A DNA stretch of 64,000 nucleotides, taken from NCBI GenBank assembly GCA_000320545.1, contig ADNK01002555.1:1-64000 (forward strand), given 5' to 3'. The position numbers and the translations under genes are program-made. The notes beneath the pieces were generated by a model. The model did no database searches, was not told the DNA's origin, and saw only the letters and a program-made list of their open reading frames with translations. Positions 8,090 through 51,650 of this stretch are shown here, in pieces. Source of the stretch: Bigelowiella natans CCMP2755 (lineage: Eukaryota; Protista; Cercozoa). Position 1 is the stretch's first letter; every line of letters begins with the position of its first letter.

Positions 8090-9300
8090 GTCTACTATGT
8101 CAGTCAAGCGGTGGGCCATTCATCATAGCATGAAACATCAAAAGATGGTGTATGGTCTTGTTTTTGTTGTTGTCATGCATGTTGCACTGCAGCAATATAT
8201 GGGTTCGTCGTGCGCATGACAGCTCAGCTAGCTCAGTGCTAGATTCGCAATGGATAACGATCGCAATGAACACTAGCAGCATGCGTAGCGCTGTCATTGT
8301 TGCGAGAATGATGTTGCATTGCATCATTTGCACGTAACGAACTGTTGCAAGTGCTTCACATGAAACAAACGCATTTCCAAATCTGCGCACAACTAGCTAG
8401 CAAAACAATACTAGAATAACCGTGCTAGCGTGAAGCACTCTAGCACTGTGCAGAGTAGCTTGACGTGCGTAAAGCTATAGCATGAACATGACAATGCTAG
8501 AATGGATGGTCGCACGTACACATCTAGATGCCTTCGATTGTGTTGCAGACTGCGCAGTGCTAGAGTGCTAGAGTGTCGTGCTTCAGCTGCATTGCTATAG
8601 ATTGTGGCCTACAAGGTCTAGAAGTTCTAGAGTTGACTTTGCATCACACTAGCAGCACAACTAGACAAGTTGTGAGCTAGCAAGCAAGCACTAAATAGTG
8701 GTATTTTGCAAGTTGCATGCATTTGCGCATGTTTGCACCGTTCACAGTATTTTTTTGCATGCGGTATAACAAAATGGACACTAGCATAGCCGAACGGGTT
8801 GCAAAAGAGAACCATTCTGCAATGGCATCAATTGGCACGGTTTTCGCGCGATAGCTAGCTAGGATCGTGGCCATGCTAGTGCGTACATGGCCGTCACGCA
8901 GCACGCCTTCATGCATCGCTAGACTATCACACCTTGCTCACACTTGCTAGCTTGTGGCGTCATCGGTTAACAATCTGCTCGTCATCGACAAATGGAATCA
9001 TCATCAGCTAGTCAGACATCACTCTAGCTAGCTAACGCTCATTTGTTAGCTTACACAGTGGCGCGTTTATGTGTGTATTGTGACTCAAAATGCACCAGCT
9101 AGCCAGCTAGCTGTCATTGTTCATCAAAATTGGATGCCAGCAGCTCGCTTGAAATAAATGCAGACGGCGAGCATTCATCTAGCTGTGTTCAACAACACAA
9201 CCAGACAACCCCTGTGTGCAACTAATAATTTAGCAAACGCTATCATCTAGATCATCTAGTTATGTGTACATGCATGATGCATGGTGATTGTAGACGTACA
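8090..9300. other. CTAG-rich, TpA-skewed compositional island between convergent gene ends
   Basis: About 31 CTAG in 8221-9260 versus about 4 expected by chance; other TA contexts are uncommon. Lies between the YLMG stop (7812, +) and the PIPK-like gene stop (9511, -). Confidence 0.85.
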
Positions 9301-9510
9301 CAACATCTTATAATTTAAATGAACACCGAATGGCGCATTTGACATGTACAACTTTGCTTTTACGTGAAGAATAATTAACTCGAAAAAAACCAAAAGATAT
9401 AACTTGATCACTGTAGTAATGATTTGTTGTATACACACTTTGTTTAATAAAACCCCAGCGCTAACACCTAATATCACCTTCTATAACTGTAAAAACTTCC
9501 AATCTTAGCG

Positions 9511-10042
9511 TTATCTTAACTTCGGAATCACAGCGTCTGCAAAAGCTTGTTTATACGTATGTGCAGCTGCGGATATACCTGAAGATGGAGTGTGAGGTAA
9601 ACAAAAGGTGAAAAATACATTCACGAGATGTTGCGAATGTTACAAAGTATTCAACGTTCTTCAATGGAGCAAATCGGCATCTTTGGTCGTTTTCAAGAAA
9701 AAGTATTACATAACAGCCTCTTATGTTACCAACACTACCGAAGCTACTCTAATAGCATTGATTTCAAAAAAAATATCCATGATTTATTAGTGATGACTAT
9801 GCTTTTTTCGTTTGTGTGAAAAGTCTTACTCATTCTCCTTCCTCTGGGCTGAGATGTGAAATACGAAGGGACCTGAAAACAACAACAACAAAAATAATAA
9901 TGTTCTTGGATAATACGGAGCAGTCACACCAAAACATAATACAGCATAGCATACACAATCATCGGATACAACTATGATGTACTACCAAACCTGCCAATGT
10001 AGTCAGAGTAAGAGAGAAAGCAATACGAATCAATGTATGTAA

Positions 10043-10084
<42 letters not shown>

Positions 10085-12718
10085 GGAAATTGATCTCATA
10101 CACTCACCATCCTCGAGGTATACTATAGCGTATACATAAGTCAATTAGAAAGGAAAAACATGATGATGTGTCTATCATCATATCATCATAGCACCGTGAT
10201 GGAGGTGCCTGTTTCGAATACATTCACAATTCCTATGAAGTAGCGTGCCTAAGAGGATGGTAATGAGTCAAATATTAGTATAAGTCACACACAAACACAC
10301 ACAAACACACACACACACACACACACACACAGCCTCAACCACACTCACACAAATGACTTGATAACCGCAATCCCCATTCCAAATAGAGAAACTCTTACCC
10401 TCGTCTGCTTTTTGTCCTTTGAATAATGACCGCTTGACAACGGCAATGGTGATGCTTCAATTCCTCCCCCCCCACCCCATGTTTTCCTTGGAAGTGACTG
10501 AACTCCACTAGACCAACGAATTGCGCAATATTCAATCACCTGCAATTAAAGCACACGGCATACTTACATTAGTTATTCGAATCAAATTTGAAGTAAATAG
10601 CGAAACACACCGAGTAATAATTCACTGTACCAATTTCATGCCGTTTGATTTAACACGTTTAGGAAATGTGCAGCAAACACATACTGATATTTGGAAGTAT
10701 TGCTACACTATTATTCAGAAAAGATACGAGGAAAAATATTTTAGACACTCCTAACGATACCGGGTACTACAAAAAAAGTAAGAAATCTCAAATTCACAAT
10801 CTTCATTGACCAGTTTGGACGCTTTCCTTGGCAGATGAAGAGCATGATGCAGTTGACGTTGTACAGCATATTTCCAACGAATGACTGTAGGCTTGTAGTA
10901 TTCTAGAGCCAATGAAGCCAAAGCACGTGTGTCCATCTTTCCCTACGAAGGAGAGCATAAATGTGAAGTGAGCAAAACTTATCACTATTGGCTTTATTTT
11001 AATGATCCTTTACGTATCGCTAGCTATTGTGCACGTATGAGTTCTTCTTCGCGTCTCTTCATTAGTGTGTGCGTGGATGTTTGCTGCGCTATGACAAATC
11101 AGGCGCTAATATCTAACTCATTCTGTAACAATTCATCTAATCCACGAAATAACAAATTGGAAAAACGATGCAACAACAACACCTTGTACTGGAAGAAGTG
11201 TCCGTCGCTATTATCGGTTTTGATCCATATTGAGGGCGTGTCTAGCTTCCGATGAGAGTGAAAGAACGTGGAAAATATCTGATAGAAAATTACAACTATT
11301 ATTATCATTCTTCTGCAAATGTAATGTAGTGTTGGATTTTGTTCTTTTCCCTCTTTTGTTAACCAACCACAACTTGTTGCTTATGAAGCCCTTTCATCAT
11401 TGTGAGGTTAGACAAAGATACTCACCCAAGAGAATATCAGCAATACATCTGAAACACTTACTACTACTTGCTATTGCTTTATTTGGCAGTAAGGATATCG
11501 CAGCACCACCTTGTTGACCATTTCTTGCTCCTTCTGCACATGCAATCGACCAAAGAACACTTTCCCCTTTATAATACCAAAGAATTAGTGAAGGAAAACA
11601 CATTCTTCTTCGAACACGACACATAACGAAGAGAATGAAAAATGTTTGTTATGTGTTCTTATGACTCATCAAAATGTGACCACAACAGCATAGGGTAGCA
11701 TTTGTGAATGATGCTGTCGTGAAAGAGGTATTTTTATAATGCATTTTGCTGTTTTCATTTCTATTTCTTCTCTCTATCCCCTCCCTGGCGACCATCACAT
11801 GCCTTCTACATGTGTGTCTGTGTGTGTGTATGTGTGTGTGTGTGTGTGTGACATGTACGCGTAGTGTGTAATTGAGACCTTAAGACATTTGGCAGCTTGG
11901 TCCAGCACCATTAACATATGTTTTTCACCGTCTAAAAAGCAAACAATGGAAATCGATATACTTAGTCTTCGTCTCTCTTCACGTCTCTATAAGTCTGTAT
12001 AAATATATGGAATATAAACGTACGATATCACTAGAATATGTATCTTAATGTGCCAATGACCATTGTCCTTCTTATCGTCAGGAACGTGGTCTCCTTCTTC
12101 TTTGCAAATAAGAGAGGCGTTGTTTCCTTTCATCACACATAGAGAAAATAACGTGTAAATGTCAACTACTATTGGTTAACCATGCTGCGAGCATATAACG
12201 GAGTTTTGGCTGCATAAATTATATTTGTGCGTTGTGTGTGCAATATTAGCAAACTATCTTACCTTTATACAATGCAATGAAGATGAGAGGCTGTGAGTCG
12301 AGTAAGAAAGAGCCGTTTAAGATGGTGACTTCTGTAACTGAACCTAGTTATTTGCATATTTGCATATGCATCGTATATGTTAAATTTATATCTATGTTAT
12401 GGATGTAGGAAAAATACCATTTCAACCTTTGGGATTTTCGCTCACTTTTCGCTCACACAATCATATATAAATACGCACAATTTCTTCCGTTCAACAGGTA
12501 ATGACAGCATGAAGTTGATTGGTCTCGAAAAATGCTAATCATATGTACATCGGCAATGTAAATATCAATTGTTGTAATTATCAAATTCCTGCTATAACAC
12601 GCACACACACACACCCACACACATGCCCATATACACCCGAATATGAGTTATATTATCACATACTTGAATTACATTATATTTATGCAATATATATTATATA
12701 TTAATTAATAAACATGTA

Positions 12719-12755
<37 letters not shown>

Positions 12756-14668
12756 GGATATAATTACATAACTACCCGGAGTTGGTTTCTCAAAAAATAT
12801 GCGAAAATCGGCTAAATTGCATATTCCCGGTATTCGGATAAGCTCATTTATATACTTCTGCAATGCCCTGTTAAAATTCATCATGCATAGCGTGTGAGTT
12901 TTGTTTACCCGTTATACATTATATGTTATTTGTTTTTCACATGTAATTCACGCAAATAAACAGGATGATTTCTTCCGGAAAGGATGCATGCATTTGTAAT
13001 TTCTTCCTGGTTATATATGTATATTTATTACTTTCGGCGAGCATGGACAAACGCCTTGTCAAATGATGACTGGAATACCTAATGGATCATCGAGATAATA
13101 GCAAATCAATTATTACAACCACCAACAACTACTGCCAAACTACAATCATATCGTCTTTGACACTTCAGCATACAACACAAAGAATAATAATATGTGGTAT
13201 TGTTCTACACATAATAATACCGTCGTTAGCCCTCTTTTCGGTGGAAGGTTTGGCAATTTCGATATGGAAATTGGTGGAGGGTGATGACTGCTGCTGTTGG
13301 TAGATGATGATGAGACAAACACTTCCCTACCGGTGCTTGAAGTAGTAACTATCCTGTTACCACCACCACTGTTATTATTGCTACTATTACCACCATTACT
13401 GCTTGTTTTGCCTGATCTTGAGCTATGTTTGCTACTAATGCCGGAGCGTGTTGTTGTTGTTGTGTTATCAGGCAGTGCTCTAGAGCCATAAACGCCAGTC
13501 GTTGTCCCCGAGGGTGCAGACGATGTGTTTGAGGAAGAGGAAGAGTATGAGGAAGAGGAGATGGATGCACGGAGACGTTTGTCAAAATGGTGGAAATCTC
13601 GATAACGTTTGTGAAGGTAATACCTACGAGAAGAGGTTCAAAACGATAAAGAATAAATTGATGGAGAGAGAAATCGAAGGAAAGAAAACACACGATGAAA
13701 ACCATACCGAGGAAACGGAAAATTAAAAAAAAGTCGTCGATAACAAGTAGAATCCTCTTCAATTATAAAGAATAAAAAATACGAAAACTTCAAAACACAT
13801 AATGATACAACTTTTTCCCAGTAAGTTCTCTAATCGTTGAATAAATGATGATCTAGTCTTTGTTTGTTTACGCACCCTTTTGATGGTTCATTAGAACTCG
13901 ATGCATCATTGCCATTGATTCCATGTTTTATGGAGGTGCTCTCAGCTTTCTTTTCTACTCCTCCCCCCCCCTTGTAGATAGTACCAGAGGGAATGACATG
14001 AATCACGTAAAATACAACATGGTGTGTGGAATCGATTACAGCTTTTTCGATTCGAATTTGTGGGTTTGCACGTTTCTCTCCCCCTCTCTTTCTCTTTGTC
14101 TTTGGCGACGATTGGATATCCTTCCGTATCTTGCTCTTTGGACTGCTACCCTCCTCCCCACCCTTTGATGATCCTCCGCTCTTGGCAGAACTGCCAGGAG
14201 GAATCTCCGAAGCTTGATAACACGTTGACGATGAACCTCCTTCTACCTGTACAATACGTCTAGCAAACAGACACAATAAACAAACACGATTGGTTGCTTT
14301 AGAAGACAGTATTCAAAGCAAAGCAGGAAAGCACAGAAAGTATACATAGTTTACATAACCTCAAAAGGAATTTGTATTGTAAACTCACAAAAACCATGCG
14401 CAACAAACCTTGAAACTGGTAATGGGGGCGTTTTAGCACCAGCGTTGGCCTTGAAAACAAGTTTACTACATCATTCTTTGGTAATGATTAAGAAGATGAG
14501 CACTGGACACAGCATCATCATCATTAGGGAGGTATGTAGAGAAAAACCATCGTATTATTGTGCAATATCTCCTATTTTGGACGTGTTTTACCGTTACTGC
14601 CTCATCCCCCCTCTCGAGGGGAATGTATAGTTGATCGACTATGTTTCGAGAATTTGAATCCTATTCCA

Positions 14669-14705
<37 letters not shown>

Positions 14706-15457
14706 CAGGGGTATATTATATGATAACAGTTAACACAAACATAAGAATACCCACTACTTGACTACACGTACACGACGATATAATTGTGTATCATAACAAA
14801 AAGTGCTCAGTTTACGCATGATCATGTGAAAATTGACAAATCATCGTCTTCATACACACACACACACACATATACCGTTGCCATACTGTGAATAACAGGA
14901 CCATCAGTTAAATCAAAGTCCGACGATAACGGGTCCAGGTCAGTCATAACAGTTGGAGAGGACAAAGGTGATGAAGAAGCCCCAGCAACCTATATATACA
15001 AACGGTAAAATACAACATGATGATAATACCAAACACACAAATATATCGATGTATCATGCATTTGTATTTAAACATACGCACACAATATATACTAAACTGT
15101 TTATTACCAATATATTTAGTTGAGGGGGTTAGTATACTCTCTATGATGATGATATTAATCTCTGCCAACAATCTAATACCTTTTGATGTCCCGCATTATC
15201 GTTATTATCATCGTTTTGTTTCTTGTTTCTTTCCTTTTCTATGGATGTGGTAAAGTAGGAAAAAATGCAAAATACGGTACATATACACGACAGTGCTTAT
15301 TGAAAGCATTCATTTTGCTCATGTTCATAATTACATAAAACCAAACTCTATGTCGATTATAAACATATTTGATCTTATATGACATTTTTCGGTCTATTTT
15401 TAAAATAGAAGGCGTTTTTCTTCAGCACAGGAGAGAAGGCATCATATATGCAGCTTT

Positions 15458-15493
<36 letters not shown>

Positions 15494-17794
15494 GCACCCA
15501 GTATTATTATCACCTGGTAGAGTTCTTTGCAAATCAGAAAAGGACCCCATAGGCCTTTCTTCTATTCCAGGAATCCAAGATCTACCACCAAACATCTGCA
15601 CCACCAAATAGTAGTTGTGTTAGTAGTAGTATTAGTTTTAGTAGTAGTAGTTATAGTTATAAGATTCAAGATTGAACACAAAACATCTGCACCAAATAGT
15701 AGCAGCTGTAGTAATAGTTGTGGTAATTATAGTTAAAAGTTTATAGATTCTTTTATGACCCGAAAGAGAAGATTTGGAGGTTTTGCAAAATCATCTAATT
15801 GATCCACGCCTGATGACGATGATGACGATTTTTAAAATGGAAGACAACATCAAAATTAATCAATAATAACTATCAATATTAACTAGTGTTTGTAGTGCGG
15901 TAAAATTCCTTAAAACTATATAGTATATGCATTTCCATTCAGCATATGATTTCCTCTTCAATCCCTTTTCCAACATACTGCACACAAGAAAAATCCCATC
16001 ACGCAATATGGATGTAGGAGAGTAATCGAAATATTATGCTTAATATCTTTAGGAGCGCCACAATCACCACCTACTATCACCACCTGCCAAGTTATTGATT
16101 GCATATGCAGCAGCATGCTGGCAATTGCGTTGAAAGTGCCTATATATTGATGATATACAGATCATGATGATGAGTTGTAAATTCATACTCGCACATACAG
16201 TAGTGGTATTATCGACTTATCGTGATAATACTAAAATTTATCCAAATGTTCTTAAATTTAAATTTTTAGTATTATCACGATAACATCATCACTCTTTATT
16301 GCACTGTTACTACTACTACTACTGGAGTGGAAAAACACGCCACTAACATGCGTCAAAAATGATGAAATGACGCTACAAAATGTGATATCATTCATCGTCG
16401 TCATCATCACAAGGTATCATCACATCTTCCAGTCTGTGATATCATTCATCATCAATACGTATGAATCATCACATCATCCAGTCTTCGTAATTGTAGTAAG
16501 TAGTCGTTGTGGTAGTAGTAGTACCTGAACTTTCCCCCATGCAGCTGTTTCATTTCCTTCATTACTTTATCCACCTTATTGCGCCATCATAATTGACAAT
16601 AACAAACAACAATATTTAAATCAATGCAAACTTCTTCAATGCTGGGTTATTAAGGGAAGAAAGTAGATTGGAAACCAGAAAGAATGCTTGATGAAAGAGA
16701 TAAACGTATACTTTATAATAAACTACTGACCCATGCATTGTGTATTTTCTTAGCTTCTTTTCTATCTTGTTCCACAGCATCTTTAGCTTTACTTTCCAAA
16801 GTCTGTACCCACCCTAGAGAGAATATTTGGTTCATATATAACTTTCATACATATATACTCTAAATTAAATCGACGTTTATCTTTGAATGTTGATAGTACA
16901 TACATATTAATAGATTTCCTATGTGCCTACTATGGTTATATGCGTGCTATTTGAGAGGGAAATGGGACAGAAATCTTGCCACCTACCTCCTACAAAGCTA
17001 AAAGGAAACATATTCGAAGGACTGCTATCTTGTTTGCCCTTCTGTTTACAAATATTACAAATACCAGAAGATGGATTATTTGAATGCTTCAAAGGAAACA
17101 GGGGGGGGGGATTTAGAAAACTAAACGGTACTAGTAGAGGATTATATTTGAATAATTCCAAAATTACTGAAAATGAGTACCTTGCTATTCTTGTTCTTAT
17201 TATCATCATCACCATCATCATCCTTGTCTCCAGCATCATCACTTCGTCGATGTTTATCTTCCTCTTCCTTCTCCTTTGCCCATCATGATTCAGAATACAT
17301 AATAACAAAAATAGCAGAGAGACTTTGTTTGCACGGATTTGAATCAATCGTTGTGGCGTGAATAAATTACAAAAATAGGATAAAGGTGGTAGTAGCAATA
17401 CTAAGTTGAACCTCTTGATGATGCTTTCTTGCTAGTTGAAGACTTTTGGCTTGTCCTGGTGATACTTCTACTTGATACCACACCTATTATTGCATAGTAG
17501 TACATAACCCAACTATACTTAAGAGTAGTTAAATGCTGTGTACATATTGTTACACGTCTCTCTTGAGTGTAAATCATACAGTATGTATTGTGTTATTGAT
17601 AATATTAAATTCGAGCACCGATTCTCCATTCGCATCAGTTTTGGTGTGAATCCAGGGTTTCTTCCCTTCGTAATAATGCCCAGTTTTCATAAAATATACC
17701 TGCAATATACATTCAAATGCTGATGGTGTTTTGTATGTAAACAACATGTCACTGTTTATTCACGGTAATTAGATACTTCTTCGTTTGCAGCAGT

Positions 17795-17831
<37 letters not shown>

Positions 17832-18232
17832 TTCACACACAAACGAGGATATACTACTTAGATGTTCATACCGTCTGTTCGTCATCATTCCAATTTGGGT
17901 TATCAAAGTCCTGTTGATATTCACGCACTGCAATGTATGGTTTTCCTACGATGTCAGCCAAACCAACAAAAGAATCGTTAGACACTGCTCACGTAGTAAT
18001 ACCTATACCTATAATAACACATGGAATGCCTACTGGAAAATACAAATCCAGAGGCAATAAGACTTGCAATTCGTTTTGAATCGAACACAATCGAGGTGGA
18101 TCATCTCCGTCTTTGGCACACAATACAAGACATCATCATCATCATCATCATCATCATTATCATCATCATCACAATACAAGACATCATCATCATCATCATC
18201 ATCATCATCATTATCATTATCACAATACAAGA

Positions 18233-18267
<35 letters not shown>

Positions 18268-19640
18268 CTATCATCATTACAATACAAGACACATCATCAT
18301 CATCATCGTCTCTTCATCCCGAAAGACGAGAATTTTGTTTTCATAGTTCTACTCATAGCACTTACACACGATGGCCACAATTAAAATACGTCCATACACA
18401 AATATATAAAGGGATGTAGTAGCTGATTAACGTGAATTGTACCTTCAAAAATTATCATATCAACGACCGTCTCGAAGAAAGCTGTTTCCCTATGAAGTTT
18501 CTCCTTCTTCTCTTTCCGTAGGACTTTACCCGACGAATCTTTGATTTCTACATCAACTTTGCGCACTTGCAAGATAGGTCTGTGACAGAGTAGATAACAG
18601 TGCCAGCAGAGATAACACTTAACGCCAACGTCTTTGAGTTTTAACCCTACTATTCTTATGTTCTCATTTTAGTACTTTTTATAAACTTACTTACTATTAC
18701 TACTACTGCTACTACTACTCCTCCTTCTACTACCTCTGGGTCTTTATCACAACGCCAGAGTGTGTTATAGGAATCTTGGCCCTTCGAACGAGAGGATGCG
18801 TGTATGCTGGGTTCTCCACTTGACTGATACCTTGATGATAATAGAAAAGTAGTAAATGAGGATGATTTACTAATACCTTGATGATAATAGAAAAGTAGTA
18901 GTAGATGATGGTGATTTATTCAGTTCTTATCGGGTAGTGGTATTAGTTTCATTGTGTCCATTGACATGCATCCATTACTACTACTTGGTTACTTTCATTT
19001 CAATTGCCTAAAATGTACAGTAATATAATGCAATTTAAATGCATGAAATGTATAGAAACATAATGCAAATGACTGTTCGTACGTAACGAAATGGGACTTT
19101 AAACAACACATCTTACTTCCAAACAAAAATACATCTTCACACAACTGCACTTACATACGCGAAGCGGAATATGAATTAAGTTTGTAGTCTATTTTCTTTT
19201 ACGGGTATTGAACCATATCTTATTTATCAATCGGAGTAGTATATGAATGGCAAAAAGAGGACGCTTGGAAAAAAAGGAAAAGAGGTAGTAATAGTAGTAG
19301 CAGTAGTAGTAGTATAAACAGTGCAACACTACTGTTATGATAGGAATATAACTACTTGTGAATATTTTTGTTTCTTCTTCCTCTTTTAGTTTTTCTTCTT
19401 CAGGCGTTGGTGGAGGCAGTGGCTGCTGACGATCAGTACCAATCTATATATTGTTTAAGCGGAGAGAGAATGGAAAACAGAGGGGGGGAAAGGAGTGGAG
19501 AACAACCATCTATGTTAAAACAAACAGATGAAGGTTAAGTAAAGGCTTGAGTTACAAAGTTATTAAGCAAATTGGTCGCATCTAAATAAATCATTACACA
19601 ACCACACACACGCTCACACGCTCACACGCACACACACACG

Positions 19641-19672
<32 letters not shown>

Positions 19673-19716
19673 CGCACACACGCACACACACACACACACA
19701 CACGCTTGGGCGTACT

Positions 19717-19756
<40 letters not shown>

Positions 19757-19830: not shown

Positions 19831-19868
<38 letters not shown>

Positions 19869-35699: not shown

Positions 35700-37300
35700 T
35701 TACAAGCATAGCGTTTTAGCTGCACAGGATTAGTAGGCGCGGCCATTCGAAACTCTTCACACAAAACCTAAGAATGGCAGCTGTGATCAATCAAGCAGTG
35801 CGTGCAGCATGACGGCATGCTACTAGTACACCATCACGTGCGAGATGAATGTTTTACAATTGTTTTTGCAAGGTTCCCAATGTGCAAATCATTGAAAGAT
35901 CAACAGCTAGCTGCTTGCAAAAGATTCTCTGAGCACCCACAAAAATGTGCAAGAAATGAAGCTGCACAATGGTGACAAATGGCACATGCACAATGCAAAC
36001 AATTTGTTGACTTTGCATGCTGCACTTTGCAGTCGCATGAATGGACACCTGTTTCAATGTGTGGATTTGAACAGAGCATGTGTTCTCATCAGGTACATGT
36101 GGTGTGCATGGGTACATGTGTTCCTTGCGCGTACACGCACGTGGACATGTGTGTCCCCACAATGATTGATGATTTGACAATTTGCAGCTAGCGATGTGCA
36201 AATGATTGAATCGATCTACACACATGCACCCTCTCGCACAGCGACGTTCGGCATTCGCATCAATCTAGCAATGATTGATCAGTCATTCGCTTGAACATCA
36301 TGGTGCTTTTAGCTTCACAACAATGCAGCGCGCACAGCTGCCAAAGAGACGTTTGTTCCACCTCTGGCAAATTGATCTGCCATGTCGCAACGCAAACCTT
36401 TTAGCGTTGCTGAGTCATTTTGTCATGTCCACTGCATGAGCTGCAGCGTCGCATGTGACAACTCAACGTGATGCATCTGAATTCATGTTTGTTCAGTGAC
36501 TACCTCACGTGCTTCAAAGCCAGAATGGCACCAGGTCAGCAGGGCACGCTAGTGGACTGGGGTTCCATTGAGCAGACTGCTGTGACTTGAAGCACATGTG
36601 AGACTGGCTAGCTGGGCACATCTAGACATGCTAGCATGGCCAAAAAATCCGGCTGCGACTCAAGAGCCAAATTCTTAGCCAAGGCATTGAACGAGGTGAA
36701 GGTGATGTCGTCATGACATCATTGAATTGACGCTGTAAAATCGCGGCGCTGCGTTTGCTGGATTGAGCATTGTGAACTTGCACAAGCATTCTTGCTCTCA
36801 CAAAGACGACTTTCCAAATTCCAGACAATGCTTTGCATGCTTGCAGACAAACAAACTTGGCATCAACAATGTCATGTGCATGCAGACTTTGACTCGATTC
36901 CACGTGATTGTGCAATTGTGCAGCTAGATGACTTCTTCCGGACGGAAAGCCGTTGTGGCACGCACGTTTCAAACACAATGTAGTTCATCAAGTGCCAATG
37001 ACGGCAGGTCTTTGCATTACGCCAAAATCAGTGACCTCGATGACAAAAATGCATTTGCATTGAGCAGACACAGAGTGCAAACTGCAAACATTGCCTGCAC
37101 TAGTGCATGCTTCGGCGGCTAATCCTGCACTCAACAACAAAGTCATCAAGCGATTGGATGAGACGATGACGTGCATGATGCACTCAGACTTGTGAATTGC
37201 AAATTATTTCAGCTGCATGATCAACATCATCAGATCCAACACGAATGCAGATCATTGTGTACAATGTTAGAATTTTCCGTCATGCATGCATTTCTCACTA
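35700..37300. other. TpA-depleted, TG/CA-rich island immediately downstream of the sulfotransferase stop
   Basis: About 21 TA in 35881-37200 versus roughly 90-100 expected. No TAT or ATA; 16 of the 21 are in CTA/TAG context. Confidence 0.9.
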
Positions 37301-38469: not shown

Positions 38470-40207
38470 AGTCTTATATTCTTAAACTCTGTTGATTGTA
38501 CCACACACCGGCAAATTTCCTCATCATATGAGAGCAGGACTTAGTGTTTATTGATTCGGATGAAGCTCCTGTGGATATATGAAGATATTTTCTTGCAATG
38601 GGATCGCAAGCACGTCCGATTTTGTCCAAGTATGCGGATACGAATCGCTCGATAGGATCCCTAGTGAATACTACACGAGGAACATTTGGGTTGTTCAAAG
38701 CCTAATTTGCATGACATTAGTGGGTATGTTTATTACTCATAGGTGAGAGAGAGAGCGAGAGCGAGAGAGTGTATCTATATATGTGTGAGTACACAATGTG
38801 GCAAATGTATGAATGTGTGTATCTAAAACTAGGGTGTAACTAGTACACATGGCTATCGCACCTTTTTCCATAATATAAGCTCTACCACAAACACTTTTCA
38901 TTTATCATTTTATTTGTATAAAAATGACTCCCAATCCTTCACGCTCACACATAAAAGTAGCATATGTGTGTGTCGAAAGAGGCTATGCTCGAGCACACAT
39001 AGAGATGGAATGGAGCACTGTAATGGTCATTTTATGTAAAAGTAAATAACATCGAAATTTGTCCTTGTGCCTTACTTCAAGAGCACTTCCCTTAAAAGGG
39101 GAAGGATTATCGTGCCTAAAGTAATTTGTTGATAAAAAGAGTAGTAGCTAAGAGGTATTAGCGGCAAGATTCTAGATGTCTAGATGGTACCGGTGTTTAT
39201 AAGTAAATGTTCAGACTAATTTGATCATGTTTGGAAGACGTACGTGATTGCGTCATACGATTCTAATTCACTTTTTAAATCTTTTATTAACGATGAAAAA
39301 TAGAAGTTCAAAATCTCGCAGTACCAGTAATGATGAGATTGAGCCGATGGCTCTAACCCTGCAGCGTAATTACTAAAAAGCGTTTTCCAAGCAGTGCTAC
39401 CCGTCTTTTCCTGATCGAGATTGACAATGACATCTCTGTGAACGTGTATTAACGCACATTGGTACAGCACATGACACATACATTATTTAGTATTTAGACG
39501 TAGATTTTGTTTCACTTCATATGACGCATACATTATTTAGTACTTAGACGTAGATTTTGTTTCAATTCCTGCATCTTTATCTGTTAAGGATTTCGTTACA
39601 TTTACCGAAATACACATAAACATCTTGGCTCCATGCTTCGATTCCCACAAAAACACATTTCCATCTTGTATGTACGGAAAGTTAAAGTGTTGAACGTCCT
39701 ACACAGTGATTAAAAATTGAGATTGGGAATTGTAACATATCTTGAAGCACACATTTGTACTCTCATAATCACATGTCTTGATACTGATAATTGTACTCTT
39801 ACAATAACATGTGATGCACATACCGACATGCTAAATTTTAAAAGCACGTATCAAAAGTTTTTGTACATGATGCACAATTTTGTAACCTTCGATGAGAAGG
39901 GTCGTTCTTCAGTAGGATGACGATCATAGCGTTGTACGTTTGGATTGAAATTACTGACATCTTTAACAAATACACCCCCGTTAGGAATTATCGTGCTTTG
40001 CCCAATCTTGTTCCGTGACGCTTCAACTGATGAAAGGGGTTGTAGAAAGAAGAATATTAATCAGCCTTTTGATTATCTACACTTTATTTCCAAATTAAAT
40101 GAAGACCATCCGTGCCCACCTTTGATGATGTTTTCTAGGAACAAAAGAGCAAAAGAGGTTATACGAGCTGTTCGCTTTCTTGTGATACTCATGACTGAAG
40201 TCTCCAT
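37340..40207 (-). CDS. Sulfotransfer_2-family (carbohydrate) sulfotransferase, multi-exon
   Basis: 5'-PSB motif CFMCISEKTGSTAWK and 3'-PB motif VVFTRDPIERFVSAYLDK. The last exon VAKEDLKKMIDFLKDDYNFLGNY...RVR ends at TGA 37340-37342. Start ATG 40207 is tentative. Confidence 0.85.
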
Positions 40208-40447
40208 TGTAGCAAAGGGAGAGGAGTTTGGGATCTGTGTTCTCTAAAAAAAGATGAATTTCGTCACACTGCTCAGAACTGATAATGACCAAATGTATTG
40301 ATCAACAGTGTGTGTCCGCAGTTATCCATTCTCTTTCTTGATGTGCTACAAAATAAATAATACAACACCAAAATCCAACGCATTTCTATACTGCGACAAT
40401 CCATTTACGTCAGGAAGATATTTCAACTGTGAGTTTTGCACTTCACA

Positions 40448-41577
40448 ATGCCAATCCCCCCATTCTATGGAAGCATTGGCAAGGACGTAAAAGGTCATAG
40501 CAACACGTTAGTTGCATTGGTGACTGATCGTAAGCATGTCGCATCTTGTGTAGGACTTTGTTCGAGAAGAATCAATGACGAAAAAGGTCACAGTAGATTG
40601 CAACAAGCTGTTTTCACTACACACGCGTATTTAGAGCTAAATGGTTTTCATGGGATTTTTCTCATTCCATTCAGATCCAGCAAAACTTTTTGGTGCGAAA
40701 GTTTTGAAGTTTTCAACCTCTAACGGAAAGGGTGCCAGCATCCAATCGTACACAGAATTGAGAGATAAAAGTGTAGTGTCGTACCTCAAGACTAAATGTA
40801 CATCAAAGAAAATTGATTCTACTTTTTCACTCACGGTAAATACAAAGTCTGAGGTTGAAATAGCTGCTTCTTCGAAAAAACTTTACGATGGGTTGAAGGC
40901 GACTCTGACTGGAAAACTGAATACCAGATGTAGTATTTTAGACTTTCAATACAAAAGTAAAATTTATGAAGATTACGGTTTTTCGGGCCAATCCAAATTT
41001 AAATATGAGCCGCATAAGAACACAATAAAAACTCAAATTAGTGGATGTATTGGGGACAAGCGTGGAATTAGCATTGGGGCGATGATTCCACTGGCCATGA
41101 ATACCAATACCATGACACTTGCAGAGGACACATTGCAGCTTGACAATCTGTCTCTTGGTGTTGAACTGAAGCTCAAAGATGCTACCTATCATCTGCTGAC
41201 GTAAATAAATTTTCCTTTCGAAATGTGTGAATCAATCTCAATCTGCGCTAAATTACAAATGCAACCGAAAGCCTAAATCGGAGATGGAGATCGGGCTTGT
41301 GAAAATGTCTTCTAACTTTGCAGTGGGAGGCAAAGTTCGCATTCCAGCTACCGAATGTGAGAAAATAAAGAGCATTCAACTCGCACTTAAACAAAAGCTA
41401 AATGATGCTACAACCATTCATGGAACCGTTGACAGCACTGGATGTATCAAAGGAACCATTTCCAAGTCCTTTGATGCTCAAAATGCGACTGCATCTCTGA
41501 CGTTCGGTGTCAATGTGACTCAAGGCTTGAAGCTAATGCAGCCAGTCGGAATGATGATTGATTTAGGTGATGTGTAG
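40448..41577 (+). CDS. VDAC: Mitochondrial porin (VDAC); unresolved frame junction at ~41200-41271
   Basis: First exon MPIPPFYGSIGKDVK (40448-40493) matches the VDAC N-terminal helix PPxYxxIGK. Alternating beta-strand pattern (DGLKATL, NLSLGVELK, TTIHGTVDSTG). Total about 290 aa, ending at TAG 41575-41577. Confidence 0.85.
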
Positions 41578-42760
41578 TTTGAGCTTTGCACTGCACAAAA
41601 GGTCCCACTAGGATCTGCTTCCAATGCCATGGATCTGTTGATGGCCAAATCCAATTTAGCAGTGCATGTGCTGTCAAACATGACACAAGCAAGCGTGCGG
41701 GCAACCTGGTTGGTCAAATTTCGTGTGAGTTAGTCTAGTAGTCTCTGCATGATGGACACAGCTAGACAGTGATGCAATGTGCGCTGCATGCACATGTTGT
41801 GTTGCATTGTCCACGATGGACACAGCAATGTGATGTGCACCACACTGCACGTTGATGGCATTGCAGCATTGACGTGATCGACACACGCTTTGGACCAGGT
41901 TATCCGTCCGTTTGAAGCCATGCAAGTGACAAGAGGTGTCGTTGAGTCGCGGTTGCAGTGAAATGTTTGACCTCATTAGAAGAAAAACTGCAATTGCAGT
42001 GGAGCACGAAACTGCCAAGATTTTGAATGCTGGCAGTTTTGTGGGAGTGCGCTGTCTCCCATTTGTTGTTGAAAACAATCCAGCAGAGCTTTGCTGAATC
42101 AATTTTTTGGTCACTTTGTCGTTCAGCTTGGCAACATGTTTGGATGGATCAACTCGAGTCCAAAATGTGTCTCGTTGCTCACACACTTGTTGCATGGTGG
42201 CTAGGTGGGCCTCAAAACGAAAACGGTTGAATTGTGCAACGACTTGATGTTCTCTTTGTCACTGAACTGGTGAACAAAATGGGAGGATGAGTTGAAAGTT
42301 GTGAAGTGGGAACCTGTGCCCATCCAACAATCCAGCTGTGCAAGTGCAACAAACAGTGCCCCCCAATCAGAGATGGAAATCGGCATCGCAAGCGTGTCGC
42401 ATGTGCAGATGTTGACTCTTGGGAGTCCGTAGTTTGGATGAACTAGTGGTTCTCCAGGTTGAACTCTAATTGAATGCCTTTTTTAGGCCAATTTGCCTAA
42501 TTTGCCAGCTGTTGTGGGGCCTACGCACATTTCCGAAACATTACTTAGAATCAAAAGGTAGCGTGTTGTTCAAAGATGTGCCTGACAACTCAGGCCACAT
42601 CACAATGCAAGATTTTTAATTTGATGTCGTAGAGGTGAAATGGCAAGCTATTGATGTCTATTGTTGCATTCATGTGATGATTCAATTTGTGCTTAAGTGT
42701 ATTGCGCACACTTCAAACGTACAAGAACGTGGTGAGGAGCGCGCAAAAACACTTTCTCAA
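41578..42760. other. TpA-depleted island immediately downstream of the VDAC stop
   Basis: Only 9 TA in 41581-42420, 8 of them TAG. Rich in TGCA, CATG and TG/CA. Confidence 0.9.
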
Positions 42761-42767
42761 CTCAAAA

Positions 42768-45700
42768 ATGTCGTGGATTCTGTCATGGAATGAGCAAGGT
42801 TTGCATGCGAACTGTAGCACGGGGTTGACTTTCTGCAGAATCAGATTCCACAAAATGGATAGCGTTAGCAGATGCAAACATATTTTTTGCCTGTTTTTAT
42901 TGGTTCTACAAAAGTGAAAAATGAAGAGTGGGTTTCTTCAATTTTGATAGATGGGTTGTGCAAATCACAAACATGAGGAAAGCTAACGATTTCATTTTAG
43001 TTTCCAAGCAAACTCCTGACGCCCTTGGTAGTTGGAAACAACTGGCGCTAAAGTTTCGTACGACATGTGGATTTACTGGATTTTCTGATGAAGATGTGTT
43101 TAGACTCGTAGTGACTAAAGGTGGTAGTTTGACTCCGCGGATTCTTGAAATATGTGTAAATAGCCGCAGAGCGAACTAAAATTCTTTCATCTTAGATGAC
43201 AAGAAGGTTGCAATAGTGAGCTCGGCCATCGAATGGTTCATGTTTTACCAAGGATATAAAGACGAACATGTAAGAATTCGGTATTATTTCTCAGTCAAGT
43301 ACGAATAAAAGACTAAATAGTTTCCTATATGGCATGAATACTTTCCCAGTAACTATGCGTAAATTATTCTCAGCATTGTAGTTGGGAATTCTAATTGCAA
43401 CGACTCTAAGGTCTGATATGTACCAAAATAATATGTATGAATATGTAATGCGCGATCCACATGACGCAGAGTAGCAAAATTTTATTTTCCTTCATTTCGT
43501 TTAAAAATAATGCTGTGCTTAATCAGGAGGATACTACTGTTGCCTCCTCAACATTTACCAATACTGATGGAATGCTGCGTTTAAGTCTTCCACAAACTCG
43601 GCTGAATACTGGGCTATTAAGAACTGAAGTAAGCGAGAAAACCAATTGCAGAACATGGAGCCAGCTGTATTAATGTATCAATACATATGTGAATATGTAT
43701 GTTATATATTATGTGTATACGTGTATGCATTTATGAATTATATGTAGCATATAATATTTGCCGTCACGGACTGAGTAATGTTATATCGACTTAAACATCG
43801 GGTCTAATAAGAGAACGTTCTGTAGGAAGTTGGAAGAAGAAACTCCAGCCAGTATGTAACCTCTGCCGTGACTGTTAGTACGGCTACTATAGAAACTGAA
43901 TCGTTTGGGAAGAATAAGGCGGATACTTTATTTTCCATGCCTCATTCACGTAGTAGTAATGCGCAAGATCTAGAAATTGTTGTGAAAAGAAAGTCAAATC
44001 AATTAGAGGAAGACTTGATCCAGGTAGTGAACATAAAAGTTGCTTTCTTCTTTTTATAACCGTATTACCACATTAAACATCCTAACATATTTTGGTCTTG
44101 AACAGAATACGAAGAATAAATTTTTGGTAATTTAGGTAGAGGAGACTAACCAGAAACAAAAGGGATCCTTCAACACTGTCTCTTTTTCCCACAACGTCAA
44201 GGCCACTACCATTATTGGCCCTCTACCTCTTCAACACGACGCTAAGAATGCTGAGATTGCTCAACGAATACCTGTTTCCTCGAAAGATGGAAAAAATCGC
44301 CATTCAGTTTATTCTCAGAACAAAATCAATTCCAGTACCTCAGAGGGATCTGGACTTAGACTGCTTTCGAACCCGGGTATCATGCACGCTCCAAGTGACA
44401 TGGCTTACCAGCTACAGAAAGAAACAACAAGATGCGAGGATGTTAAAACTAAAGGGCGGGAATATCCCATGATGTATGTAACTAAATCAAATTGATATTT
44501 TTTGAAGTACAAAGAAATAAAGTATAGTGGCATAAACGAACTGATTTTGCTGAAATTCAACATTTTATTATACGACTTTGTAAATACAGCTGAATAAAAG
44601 CCCAGTTTCAAACACAGTTTTGTTTTGTTGTTATCTGACGTAAGTAATTTTTTAAATACAATACGGATAAAGAATTTATATTTAGGTTTCTAAACATGAA
44701 TGTTTCTTTGCTTCTGTCAACCAACTTAAAATCCTACATAGAATGAACCATTTTTCTTTGCATTTTATTAAACAATGCAATATTCTTAGTAACTACTACT
44801 ATCCATACATAAAGGAACGAAATTCAAAAGCATATCAAAACCTCTAAAGAATTGTCGCAGCTTGCTTTATTGGGAACCGTGCGCTATGGAACAAGTAGTG
44901 GAATTCCCACAGAAATATATGTCAAAGATCTTTGCATCAGCACGCCAGAATTCCAAATACTACGCCACGTGACTGTAGCTCTGAAAAATGGGTAATTAAT
45001 GCTTTTATCGAATTACCTATCTCTTCCTTTATTGTTCCTATTTATGTATCTATAAATGATGCGAATGATGTTATTGGTGGTGTATTTACATAGAGAGCTC
45101 AATGCATGTCTCGGTCCCTCGGGTGCAGGGAAATCGTCATTATTCGACTTTCTAACGGGAAGGTTTAAAACTGATATCTCATATTTAATGAGAGAGAACT
45201 GTCTTCATGACTAGAATATGTGAAAGATAGTGTCTTTAAATTTTTAGTCAGATTCGATCAAAATAATGATAACATAGTCGTTACTACAACCAACCTCTAG
45301 TGATGGATTTGGTAAACAGAAATATAGAGGCTAATGTCACAAATGGGGTTGTAATTGTTAATGGAAGAGAAGTCACGCCAGAATGGTCTTACTTAATTCT
45401 AGAGAAGGAAAAATATTACTTACTCTTAAAATAGCAAAATATATTTTTGTATCATTGAATTTGTATACCACTAATCCCGACAGACTTATACATGTTCATC
45501 GTTTATATTCTACTTCTAAAAGCTACATATCACCGTTAGGAGATCCAAAAATATAGCTTATGTAGAACAGGATTCGTCACTACTTTCAACCTCCACTGTT
45601 CGAGAGGTTCATAAGAAAAATACTTATAATTAGTATCATAAGTAAACTCTTAAATCCAAATATCACACCAATTGACAAATTTGTTGAATTGAATACTGTT

Positions 45701-48700
45701 TCTATAAAGGCCTTAATGTTTGCTGCAAAAATACAAAGAGCAGATACTATTTCCGAGGATCATGTCATTCATAAGGTCTTCGACATGATATGACGATAAA
45801 ATGCTAATTAATGATATTAGTTTCGTAGACATGGCTAGTAGTGTCCTTATCCAAATTACTTAGTAGAATAATTAGCATCATTACCTTTAGTTCAGATATG
45901 GTAATTCTCCCTGATTTTGTCAATCTTTATTTTGATGCGAGAACACATATGAGTATTTCAACATGCTACTGGCTTCTTTTTCCTTAGGTCGAGGAAGCTT
46001 TACATATCCTTCAACTGGATCATCGGTAGGTTGGACATATTTTTTTCCCCATCGTATCAAGTGTTTCGCTACATATTTTGCATCATCCTCTTCAAATGCA
46101 AATGTCTTATTCTCGCGTTAGACTGCATATGGTCGTATAATCAAATTATTAAGTATTATGCCAATTATAATGAAGGCAGCATAATTTCATTGGTGGCAAT
46201 GTTGAGAACTGGTATGGAGGCATTCGGAGTCTTTCAGGTACATAAGATTTATCATACAGACTTGATATAATCGTTCGACCGCGAAATATTAATGATATTA
46301 GTAAAATAATGTTATATCGCTCGTATTGCGATTGATAAACTCCTTAAGCCTGTAAAATTGGATTGGAAAAATCGATTTATGTTATAACACAATATCAAGT
46401 TAATCTGATAACAAAGGAATATTTTATGTTAATCATTTTAGTTACATCTTAGGTGGCGAAAGACGTCGACTAGTTATTGGAGAACAACTTGTTAGGGATG
46501 CGGAAATTATCGTTCTTGATGAACCAACATCAGGTATGCACGTGGAAACTGTATTGATGATGCAAATAATGGTGAAGAGAGTGAAGGGTATCAAGGGAAT
46601 CCGCATGTGTCTCTTACTTCTCCTACTAGTTTACCAGAAGATAGCTTCCGAAAAAGCCATGATTGAAAATATCACCATGCTATAGTTGTTTATTATATAA
46701 GGATGATATTGAGAAGTGTTGTTTATGTAAAAAAATTTTAAGAAACCAAAATGTGATTACTATGCTTTTAACTGTCACTTTAACTTCTGAGTTTTTCTAA
46801 AATTCATAAAGGTGTCGATTCTGCAATTGCTTTGGAGATAACAATACTTTTGAAGGAGCTGTGCAAACGAGGCAAGACCGTTTTTGCATCTTTCCACCTT
46901 CCGTCGTCACAGATGTTTCAAAGGTTAGATATTTTTGCATTGAAATATATATGATTATTACTATTTATTATCGCTTGAAGTTGTAATACTGAAATTGATA
47001 TCAAAGGTTTGATAATCTGTGCTTAATGGCCAATGGTCAAGTAATTTACAACGAATCTCGGTATATAGGATAATATTAATTAACACGAAGGAGTAGCTTT
47101 TCGTTTTGGTATAGCATCACTTCTCAAAAATAGCATGTGTATGATTTCTTCCTATAATATATAGGTTTCTTTCGTAAATAAAAAATAATTACCAGCAATA
47201 ACTAAATCTACTCAGAAAACGAACACACATACACACACTACACAATTACATTATCATGATCACCATCATCATCATTCAAACCACATATATGCACAAGGGT
47301 ATATTATCAGGGCTGCAGCAGTAAGCTTTTTCAATTTATGCAACGAGCCATGTCCAATTGACTATAGGTATTTCTTTTTTGGGGTTCTGCAATATTTCAC
47401 TACATTATAGGTATGCAAATATGATAATCACGATATGTTTCACATTTAGCCCTGCGGACCATTATCTCCAAGTGATCTCGAATCGTGAGCGGGCAGCTAC
47501 TATATCGAAAATATTTAAGACTGAATTCCAGGGAAGAAACAAACTGAAACGGTATAGGGATCTTTGATGATAGTGAAAGTATCCATAGTATCAATTGATT
47601 TAGATTAGAGTTGTCGATAGTATACATCAATAATGCCTCATAAAAATACAGTGATGATACTAATAAAAATAAAGATATAATGCCAAGAATGTCAGAGTTT
47701 ATAATAAATATACATTAGTAAATGGCAGAAACTATAGAACAAAATCCTTTAACTAGGGTATTTTTTTATTTTTGTGCTAATTCTATAGAACAAAAGAAGC
47801 TTTTCGCTACCCGAACCTTACTGTTTCCTCATCATTTTCCACTCAATTTAGGTATAAAATATGTATTTGTTATTTTGGCATTATTCTTCTTAAAATGTTA
47901 TCACCAACTACATCACCCTGGTGTAGTTATTAAAATAAAATCAGTTACAATATGATGTATTTTTTACATTAGAAAAATCTCTTACTTCTAGCTTTGATAT
48001 GATATTTTCATGATTAATTTCAAAATTGAAATTGGTATTAATATATGTTACGTATTCTCGTAACGTCTGTCAGAATATGAAATATGTAATAACGTAGTAT
48101 TTGTAATTACGATCGGGCCTAATCAAGAAAAATATATACTATTGAATTAAGGTGTCTCTTCCTCCGGAAATCTCGCCAATGGGCACGCGATTATGTTCTC
48201 CTTGGGGCACAAATACTAAACTATGTATACTATTTTCATTTTCCTAACCTATTTATTTAGATGTCTTTTGAATAACTCCTAGTGTTACTTCTCGTGTACT
48301 TTCATTAAACGCTATTCAGATGCGTCAAAATCTTTCTCACGTAATAGAATTAATTAGGTGTTAGCTGGGCTTCTCTTTGGCATCCAGTATCGACCGTTTG
48401 TCCTTGACTCGGAAGAGATTGTAAACGGGGCGTTCCAATTTAGACGAAATTTTTTCGTGGTAGTCATCCATCTATATTAGCTACGATTATTGAATTAGAT
48501 AGAACATACATGTTGCATGAATGAATAAATTAACTTGACATAGGGTTTTGAAATCATTATCTGTCCGCTTTGAAATATATGTTGCTTCAACTACTATTTT
48601 TACATCTTTTTTTTCTTTTAATTTTAAATAAACTATAACTTCATGATACTGCAATCCAATAAGTGGAAGGGCAAGACCAGGATCAATAATTTGAAAAGTT

Positions 48701-50655
48701 GTGATTAAATCTAAACTGGGGATATCAAATTTTACCAGATTTAATGTCTGATCTAAAGTATTAACCTATTGACAATCAACTAGTTAGTGTTAATGGTCGC
48801 TGCATTCACTCCGGGGTTCACTTCAATTGCAAAATTTGAGGCTGAGAGAGGTGGAATATAATATGTTCTGCGGCGAATAAAACAACATCAATATGACTAA
48901 CGTTGCCGATATTATAAATCTATTGAAGACCTACTATCAATATTATTGCCGTCAGTAGGTATAATCATAATAATTTATCGTTATACTTGACGTTTCTGTG
49001 AAGGAGTTATATTTCCCAAAGAATTCATATCATCGCCTGGAAAACCTGTATGATAAGAATTATCATCTTAAATCACAACTATTACATATAAACTCCGCGA
49101 TTCATGTAACTAATCTTTACAATAATGAATACCAGAGCAAGTAAAAAAGACTCAAAATAGTCTGATGGTCAAATAAATAAACTATATACTGGTACAAGGT
49201 CTCTTACGTCGCGAAACTGCGAGCAAGCGATATGGATTCTTGGCACATTTCATATCTCTCACTGCATGCTCTTGGGTGTGACTTACAATAAAATGTCTTA
49301 TGGCACTTAAAAGCTAATTGGTATTTGCTACGAATAAATGACGGATTAGGTCGTTGAATCGATATCTGCAATCGTCTTTTCCATCTGCTTCTACTTTCTA
49401 TCTGGGCTGGCAAGAGACCGATATGCCGGTTGCATTTTCATTCTGGTAGTTCTAAATTCTGAATAGAGAGTCGTGAAATCAGTTCAGGAGCAATTCAATT
49501 ATATATACGATGCATAGAACAACCATTGATATTAGAGTATCCTTTTTGCGGTTTGTAGTATGGTTTGCCATATGTATAACTTGTTAAACGTACAGAAAGC
49601 AAATTTAAATGCATTTCGCGTTAACAATTCGAGGTTGACATGGAGTGTTTCTCCTATTTCTCAGATTGCGTTTATGCTCCTTAATGAGACGTTAGGTCCA
49701 TCTATCCAAAGAAATATCCGAAAATATTACTAAAATTCATATATTCACTTTCGTTATTAGCATCATTTTCTCAATCGCTCAAGCATTACATGTCATTTTT
49801 TGCTTTAAACCATTTTAACTCATTTACTAGGATTGATAGCTGCCATTGTGAGTCCGAGTTTCGCCTTAGCGATTTTGATTCATACGCCTCCAATTTTCTT
49901 GATGTTTGCTGTCGCACAACGGGGCATCGAAGGGCTAAATGTCAGTTCACTCGATATATTAAACTATCGAGAATAGCGATTGAATACTTGAGGTTCTTCG
50001 AGAGATCACAACGAAGCCATGAGCGTGAGATATAACCTAGATTGTAAGAAGTATTTATGTGAAAAATAGCTGTGCGCTTTTAAAATATAAATGATGTTTT
50101 TTTTCCCTTTGCTGTTGTAACTTCATTTTTACAACATCAATTCCCACTTTTCAAATTAATTAGGATGTCTTAATATACTTAAATCCGTTTTCTTACGCTT
50201 CCATCGCTCTTCTGGAGAACGAAGGACTCGGAGCAGGTGACAAGAATAGAAAGAAACACATAAAAATGCAAAGACATTTTTATACGGGAAAATCTCAAAT
50301 TTATTTTATTACTGAAGAAACCTATGGGCTTCGTCGTTTCGTCTTGAGATAGATGTTTGGAAGTAGTCGCCAAACCCATAAATACAAATACCATCGTTTC
50401 TTATCTTCAGTTAAATAAAACCACAAACCTGTGCAAAATAATTCACTTACTAAAGGCGTGTTCCCTACCGGAAATGGCGAAACTCGCAGTCTACTTGAGG
50501 AGCGTGAGTTCACAGATCCAGAAATTACAATGAATGGACTAGGAGTCTGGGAAAATTTTGGAGCCCTTCTCGCGATAGCTTTTGTTTTTCGAGTGTTTGC
50601 ATATTATCTTCTTCTAAGATTCCATGATGCAGGACGGGTTACGAAACAAAATTGA
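42768..50655 (+). CDS. ABCG (White-type) half ABC transporter with long N-terminal extension, >25 exons; start tentative
   Basis: Walker A GPSGAGKSS (~45112-45140), Q-loop AYVEQD, signature LSGGERRR, Walker B IIVLDEPTSGVD, H-loop SFHLP, PADHYL, then TM segments. Ends ...RVFAYYLLLRFHDAGRVTKQN TGA 50653-50655. Confidence 0.92.
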
Positions 50656-50659
50656 CATA

Positions 50660-51650
50660 TGCAATGTCGCATTGCTAGATTGGTGGGAGGAATGAGCACA
50701 TCACATTGTCATATTGAGTTGTCCATTGTCGAATTGAAAAAGGCAATGCTTATGCTAATATGATGACCCAAGCAAATGTTGACGAGTCAAAGCAGGCTTT
50801 TTGAGCAAGCAACTTTAAATACATTATTAGTGAACCAAGCTAGCAAGCCTAGTTATTATTAATGTTCTGCAACATTGTCTGCTACATCTAGACAACATCA
50901 CTTCTTGTTCCATGACGATGGCATGCTACCATGCTACCATGCTACCATGAACGGCGTTGTTGAACGTGGGTGGATGTCCAATGCCATGGCTTCATTTGTG
51001 CATTCATGTCAGTTAGAAGATGCTGCAAAGGCAAATTGCACCTTTCGAGCGGCGATCGCATCAGATGACACATGTGATGAGCGGTTGTGGTGAGAAAAAT
51101 CATGCTATTGTTGTGCATGAGCACTAGAGCGACAGCATCTGGACGCACCATTTGTCATTTCCATTGTTGCTGACAACTGTTGACCAAATGGTGAAAATGG
51201 GTGTTGTAGGGTTTCCATTTGAATGAACAATGGCATGTGAGCTAATGACTGTTCTAGTGATGCGCATGGCGCACTCTGCTATCGTGTTTGCTGCAATGAA
51301 TTTCGCAAGCAAAATTTGTGCTTAGTGAAATGCAACAATGTTTTCACTGTGAGAAATTTCAAACTGTGCTAATCTAGTAATGCAGGACCTGCTAGTGCAC
51401 ATCCTTCACCAAAGGCCATTGAATCATGACTCATCACAGATTTGATGAGTGCAATGCATGTGCTTGTGCACGTATGATGCTGTAATGATTGCAAATGCAA
51501 TGCATTTTTCTATTTTATTCATTGTTGTTGGGTTGCGTGATGTGATGCATGTCAGCCTAGTAGCTACAGTTGCATGCAATTGATGAGGAATTAACAAATT
51601 TTACTTCGTCATCAACAATTAGTGAGTGAACAAACTGCAAGCCCAAAAAA
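50660..51650. other. TpA-depleted island between convergent ABCG and AAAP gene ends
   Basis: 18 TA in 50881-51480, 16 of them in CTA/TAG context. Flanked by stops at 50655(+) and 51717(-). Confidence 0.85.

Follow-up and report, generated by a model that had tools for sequence, protein, structure and literature searches.

What process has removed the dinucleotide TpA from DNA around the ends of genes in the chlorarachniophyte Bigelowiella natans? The question is raised by a 64,000-nucleotide stretch of its nuclear DNA (the window), for which a preliminary description had listed four main islands, at 8090-9300, 35700-37300, 41578-42760 and 50660-51650, and a weaker one at 240-690, in which TpA seemed to have given way to TG and CA. 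We conclude that the islands are very probably ordinary B. natans spacer and 3′ untranslated region (UTR) DNA that was rewritten by a TpA-specific A:T>G:C mutator of this species, a conclusion drawn from the matching signature. Genome-wide searches were made in an assembly of 91.4 Mb (3736 contigs), and 200 kb of contig C2540 together with 30 Ras loci served as independent test DNA, so that about 0.35 Mb was examined in total.

Loss of TpA and the known mutator

In three of the islands the loss of TpA is strong. The observed/expected ratio (o/e) of TpA is 0.30 at 35700-37300, 0.29 at 41578-42760 and 0.48 at 50660-51650 (0.34 within the core of the last), against 0.88 for the whole window, and TG+CA stands at 1.6-1.8. 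Depletion at 8090-9300 is moderate, the TpA o/e being as high as 0.83 because 31 CTAG lie within it. Counts of unprotected TA, with no preceding C and no following G, are 10 seen versus 71 expected (35700-37300), 6 versus 53 (41578-42760), 15 versus 52 (50660-51650) and 23 versus 55 (8090-9300), with Poisson P values of 1e-19 to 8e-7 that are nominal, as the regions were picked post hoc. At 240-690 TG/CA is elevated and the deficit of unprotected TA is not significant (15 versus 22.5 expected, P=0.06); the described exchange of TpA for TG/CA stands in the four main islands.

Pooled over the four main islands and both strands, TA occurs 352 times where the rest of the window predicts 881, and CA/TG 1084 times versus 689; TGCA is found 216 times versus 54 expected, and CTAG 110 times versus 19. 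The exchange can be expressed as a conversion index, vulnerable TA/(TA + TG/CA products), which is 0.10, 0.11, 0.18, 0.24 and 0.39 in the five islands; 379 introns give 0.54, and divergent gaps 0.50. Normal TA content was correctly described for the divergent spacer at 2884-3721 (74 TA, index 0.64, scar-free; scars are defined below) and for 46261-46440 (24 TA retained), and another divergent spacer, at 38900-40600, is likewise scar-free with an index of 0.50. In the deep islands the surviving TA are flanked mainly by C or G, and AA/TT shows no loss (o/e about 0.9-1.35). Direct comparisons are few and unpolarized: of the transitions that separate two copies of a repeat, 4 of 7 fit TA>TG/CA, as do 23 of 52 in imperfect scars and a single Tyr/His pair in the porin gene discussed below.

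The proposal that TA>TG/CA mutation made the islands agrees with a process that was seen directly in B. natans in 2026. Mettrop et al. (bioRxiv 10.64898/2026.01.13.699255) reported a roughly 1000-fold rise in mutation rate within two viral inserts of mutation accumulation lines, a hypermutation that is almost exclusively TpA>TpG/CpA and occurs in some lines only. They described 124 clusters of TpA-poor windows across the genome (clusters of at least 3 kb were considered), with the most complete erosion on a silent viral insert, and proposed an adenosine deaminase that acts in defence against foreign DNA (bioRxiv 10.64898/2026.01.13.699255). In their data, A:T>G:C accounts for 230 of the 231 mutations in the two viral regions, almost all at TpA, and by our own count of their Table S2 a G follows the mutated A in 23 of 231 (P=3e-5 against 20%). 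This bias against a following G explains the better survival, in the islands, of TA with a C or G at its side. The cut-offs of the preprint (TpA 0.43, CpA+TpG 1.52) are passed by 35700-37300 (0.30 and 1.84) and 41578-42760 (0.29 and 1.73); 50660-51650 stands at 0.48 and 1.83 overall with its core at 0.34, and 8090-9300 and 240-690 miss the TpA cut-off.

The islands themselves are not of viral or foreign origin, consisting of host spacers, a 3′ UTR and the end of a coding exon, with repeat fragments in only two. In the published lines, nine TpA mutations fall outside the two viral regions, mostly in or near virus-like open reading frames (ORFs), where about 6800 mutations would be expected if 3′ zones mutated at the viral per-site rate (assuming 10,000 zones of 40 sites). 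Gene 3′ zones are not constitutive mutator targets under the laboratory conditions of those lines. One of the de novo TpA mutations, at scaffold_69:214684 in Table S2, has no viral ORF nearby and lies on the scaffold of the window; its position could not be mapped to the window. The assignment of the window to B. natans and to this scaffold comes from the first exon of its porin gene, which matches Joint Genome Institute (JGI) protein Bigna1 80291 of scaffold 69 at 100% identity.

CTAG scars and gene 3′ ends

The islands had been said to share no recognizable sequence, which proved wrong. All five contain scars, by which we mean an exact direct duplication of four bases on both sides of CTAG (an 8-bp insertion). 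This arrangement is present at 25 of 61 CTAG in the five islands and at 1 of 111 elsewhere in the window; the islands therefore do have an element in common, and two of them contain repeats as well. Across all DNA examined, 247 of 1271 CTAG have the four-base duplication, compared with 23 for three bases and 13 for five, and four is the only length clearly enriched. The duplicated target shows a palindromic preference, C/A-W-W-G/T. One duplicated 12-mer has 1064 copies in the genome versus 13 for a non-duplicated control, and we roughly estimate 20,000-60,000 scars genome-wide. The excess of CTAG in the islands arises because scars create the motif and because an A before G is a poorer substrate for the mutator; much of it is inserted by scars, and not only spared. 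Deamination of methylated cytosine was set aside as a source of CTAG, as CCAG/CTGG is only modestly low and scars account for much of the excess. The duplicated targets do not have TA at their centre, and for this reason an EndoV-type cut around a central TA was discarded.

On the independent DNA, scars lie within 1.2 kb downstream of the stop codon in 16 of 18 Ras genes, and within 1.5 kb upstream of the start in 2 of 15. They are present at 14 of 15 convergent versus 2 of 16 divergent junctions (P=7e-6), at densities of 2.2 and 0.07 per kb, and this contrast is the same once scars are collapsed and genes re-predicted. The gene finder used here is self-trained and ab initio, and it recovers 9 of 14 introns known from RNA; because it fuses tandem genes, only strand switches were used as junctions and head-to-tail junctions are scarcely sampled. 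In the 200 kb of C2540, a scar lies no more than 300 bp from eight of nine TpA-erased segments (by chance, about 0.29 for each); the remaining segment sits in a long exon. The divergent spacer at 84648-85989 is scar-free.

Three of the 15 convergent junctions show deep loss of TpA, and none of the 16 divergent ones, whose index is 0.43-0.56; among 21 scar clusters, seven have an index no higher than 0.25. The index of 15 Ras 3′ zones spans 0.24-0.58: seven zones are at or below 0.35, and six, at or above 0.50, are intron-like and uneroded. Deep loss is thus confined to roughly one-fifth to one-third of 3′ zones and is absent from the divergent spacers sampled, and it is the CTAG scar rather than loss of TpA that generally marks gene 3′ ends. 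The earlier statement that every gene end has an island is accurate within the window, where no established gene end lacks one, but does not extend beyond it; the bias towards 3′ zones rather than promoters is borne out.

Repeats and transposons are found in the same zones. The island at 35700-37300 contains a dispersed repeat of about 100 bp (36057-36161) with at least 40 genomic copies of 79-91% identity, one of which sits in a TpA-erased inverted-repeat element of contig C2540, and pieces 41958-42078 and 42138-42195 are also copied on contig C3214. The most complete erosion in C2540 is in two elements, both in or beside scar clusters. The first (157900-164200) is a 6-kb element resembling a long interspersed nuclear element (LINE), with endonuclease and reverse transcriptase, which lies inside a scar cluster and has an index of 0.00, only 7 TA remaining in 5.5 kb. 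The second (186575-190660) is a TpA-erased 4-kb element with long inverted repeats, a CTAG scar at its right end and relatives on about 15 other contigs; no Pfam match was obtained for its five open frames. This element was rejected as a CTAG-ended parent of the scars, its family boundary lying elsewhere, by our reading with TAG...CTA ends and a 5-bp duplication. Possible intermediates of scar formation are L037:2761-2865 and C2540:121895-122021, both of them short inverted repeats that are bounded by CTAG and flanked by duplications of 4 bp; the former, a 105-bp palindrome, is single-copy with no dispersed copies.

The window also contains a young long terminal repeat (LTR) retrotransposon on the plus strand (59218-64000, index 0.51). 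It has a 326-bp LTR with inverted ends (59218-59543) and, from 59583, a gag-pol frame of 1472 codons that is open to the window end and has protease, reverse transcriptase, RNase H and integrase zinc finger domains. At least 40 copies of the LTR, among 684 candidates, are 99-100% identical. At 59214-59217, the best 40 copies all match in 2-10 bases upstream of the LTR start, a hint of an insertion-target preference ending in CA or GCA in a sample biased by score ranking. Directly left of the insertion, 58500-59217 has slight TpA erosion and one scar (58977). In Table S2 of the preprint, the de novo 'small insertion' at scaffold_8:334281 equals the last 12 LTR bases (59532-59543), and many further new indels or complex changes end in ACA; these may be miscalled new LTR insertions, in which case retrotransposition would be active in the mutation lines.

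The best-documented gene end in the window is that of a plus-strand gene whose 3′ part (46453-50900) has 14 introns supported by RNA, a stop codon at 50652-50654 and a poly(A) site at 50900; read from its sequence, with no database match, it is a putative ABCG-type transporter gene. Its 3′ UTR (50655-50900) is partly eroded, with 93 vulnerable TA sites per kb and two scars. The eroded core between two mRNA ends (50901-51584) has 31 vulnerable sites per kb and one scar, and low-level RNA covers most of it. The convergent minus-strand gene is seen in RNA at 51585-51998, with a CT..AC joint at 51822-51998, and its mRNA ends at about 51585-51624, or at 51369 in one run (RNA over 46450-52400). No strain differences appeared in the RNA runs examined.

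A two-exon porin (VDAC-like) gene on the plus strand (40641-41577) has its stop codon (41575-41577), which homology supports, directly adjoining the island at 41578-42760. The deeply eroded spacer (41578-42900, index 0.11, three perfect scars, with the repeat pieces inside) is at a head-to-tail junction, and TpA is already declining from about 41100, some 400 bases within the coding region. The deeply eroded spacer at 35700-37300 (index 0.10, five perfect scars) and the moderately eroded one at 8090-9300 (index 0.24, 11 perfect scars) are convergent by the ab initio model, with one minus-strand gene backed by Pfam: an exon at 38561-38698, in a gene directed towards 35700-37300, matches PF03567 (Sulfotransfer_2; E 1e-7), the plus side of this island being ab initio only, as are both gene flanks of 8090-9300. 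The weak zone at 240-690 has three CTAG scars. The long ORFs of the window gave no Pfam match; its genes are rich in introns, and spliced gene models were searched one exon at a time. Elsewhere in the window, a tandem array of about six 58-bp units lies within a plus-strand gene (7260-7650), and about 24 kb of the minus strand (9500-33230), made up of exons and of introns rich in microsatellites and free of scars and islands, is either one very long gene or several.

Explanations for the islands

Two questions related to the mechanism are: (i) what draws the mutator to gene 3′ ends; and (ii) how the scars are made. What is observed is the mutational signature and its context rule, the bias to 3′ zones, the patchiness, and the coincidence with scars and transposons. 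On balance we lean towards the reading that mobile elements land in 3′ spacers and episodically draw the mutator there. In its favour are the position of the scars, their coincidence with erased segments, and the intergenic location of 17 of 21 new indels in the mutation lines (P=7e-6). Mobile elements would land in gene 3′ spacers, where scars, repeat fragments and whole transposons are found; the inserted element would attract the mutator, and mutation would spread about 1-1.5 kb into the host flank, fading in adjoining coding exons or UTRs; the element would later excise or be deleted, leaving a scar and an eroded spacer. An implication of such a cycle is that erosion should be episodic and patchy. 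The scar could be left by an element with the termini CTAG, or CTA and TAG, if its overhangs annealed once it had been excised.

Several points weigh against this reading. The sample amounts to only about 0.35 Mb, with junction types called by our own gene finder. The number of scars is not significantly correlated with the degree of erosion (Spearman -0.25, P=0.18), and two of the four main islands, 8090-9300 and 50660-51650, are unique sequence with no recognizable repeat. The window's young LTR element shows no erosion, which implies that insertion by itself does not trigger the mutator. No CTAG scars are found among the 21 new indels of the mutation lines, and no element family with CTAG ends turned up in the DNA and searches made.

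A second explanation, possible but distinctly less probable, is that transcription termination guides the targeting: read-through RNA, R-loops or silent chromatin past the poly(A) site would recruit the mutator at a low or conditional rate and would separately attract the scar enzyme. It is possible, though less likely than not, that the TpA editor and a CTAG-leaving integrase or transposase are both directed past poly(A) sites by termination or read-through signals, host spacers being rewritten as a by-product of surveillance. This would account for the eroded core between two mRNA ends at 50901-51584 with its low-level RNA, for erosion that begins within the porin coding region, for the two repeat-free islands and the loose coupling of scars and erosion, and for two features of convergent junctions, an increase of TG+CA at almost every one (P=6.5e-6) and a lower TpA minimum (P=0.02). 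It fits poorly with the six uneroded Ras 3′ zones, with the index of Ras 3′ zones as a group, which does not differ significantly from that of divergent gaps (P=0.19), with the lack of ongoing signal in the mutation lines, and with the most complete erosion being on transposons and, according to the preprint, on a silent viral insert. These same observations (most 3′ ends mildly eroded or not at all, peak erosion on transposons, nine stray TpA mutations) argue against the constitutive terminator-chromatin system that was first envisaged.

It is rather improbable that the pattern reflects survivor bias, in which non-coding DNA is hit at random by insertion and mutation, whose products are eliminated from introns and promoters and persist only in 3′ spacers. 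The genome is gene-dense, with short introns and short divergent gaps in which insertion or silencing would often be harmful; against this, the long divergent spacers at 38900-40600 and in C2540 are scar-free too, and new indels in the bottlenecked mutation lines are already biased to intergenic DNA (17 of 21, P=7e-6).

It is very improbable that TpA carries a heritable modification (base J, hydroxymethyluracil or methyladenine) that both marks terminators and mutates, or that repair with the WA bias of polymerase eta is at work. TpA is symmetric, and base J is present at kinetoplastid termination regions (PMC4150806, PMC7055916). Set against these points are the patchy occurrence of the islands, the retention of AA/TT, which tells against the pol-eta-like WA>WG bias once suggested, and the known mutator, which accounts for the signature with no terminator mark. 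A search for TET/JBP, insensitive because it was run exon by exon, gave one sub-threshold match (23.5 bits, cut-off 34.9, E 0.0014). Literature searches for a B. natans methylome gave nothing relevant. Least credible of all is that the islands are decayed elements that were TA-poor from the outset, as the repeat fragments in two islands might suggest, since erosion enters a 3′ UTR and a conserved coding exon and the loss has the same context specificity as the measured mutations.

Relation to other systems

Fungal repeat-induced point mutation changes C to T and so creates TpA; it needs duplicated sequence, is meiotic, and can leak into flanks. It is like the process in B. natans in being a local, dinucleotide-specific hypermutation linked to repeats, but its chemistry is the opposite, and two of the islands here are single-copy. 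The same comparison is discussed by Mettrop et al. (bioRxiv 10.64898/2026.01.13.699255). In kinetoplastids, base J at sites of termination is, like the islands, a thymine-linked feature of convergent termination zones; it differs in being a present-day mark at all such sites that needs JBP enzymes, not convincingly found here, whereas the islands are a mutation footprint.

Excision footprints of Tc1/mariner elements consist of a target duplication around a few constant bases. The scars share with them a duplication that flanks constant bases and a palindromic target preference, but here the target is a variable 4 bp, the constant part is CTAG, the footprints number tens of thousands at gene 3′ ends, and no parent was found. 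Among nine insertion data sets for other elements, Mu and P favour gene starts, Ds and Pb both ends, and Mb, mildly, termination sites (PMC7337890).

The closest relation is to the TpA hypermutation of the preprint, which concerns the same species, the same TA>TG/CA signature and TpA-poor windows genome-wide. It documented the process on viral inserts, whereas the targets described here are host spacers of 1-1.5 kb at gene ends that are not detectably mutating in its lines. The text of the preprint (bioRxiv 10.64898/2026.01.13.699255) contains no mention of gene ends, nor the terms terminat-, UTR, CTAG, footprint or downstream, and no published description of a CTAG scar or footprint was found in the literature searched. 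The mutator itself has already been described; as far as that literature shows, the position bias to 3′ ends and its association with CTAG scars are unreported.

Finally, we note that the preprint leaves open how the mutator chooses its targets, and that host footprints at gene 3′ ends, accompanied by scars, narrow the choice to targeting triggered by elements or by termination. The scar is an abundant, position-specific mark with no known maker, and enzymology would have an interest in a natural DNA adenine editor with TA specificity.

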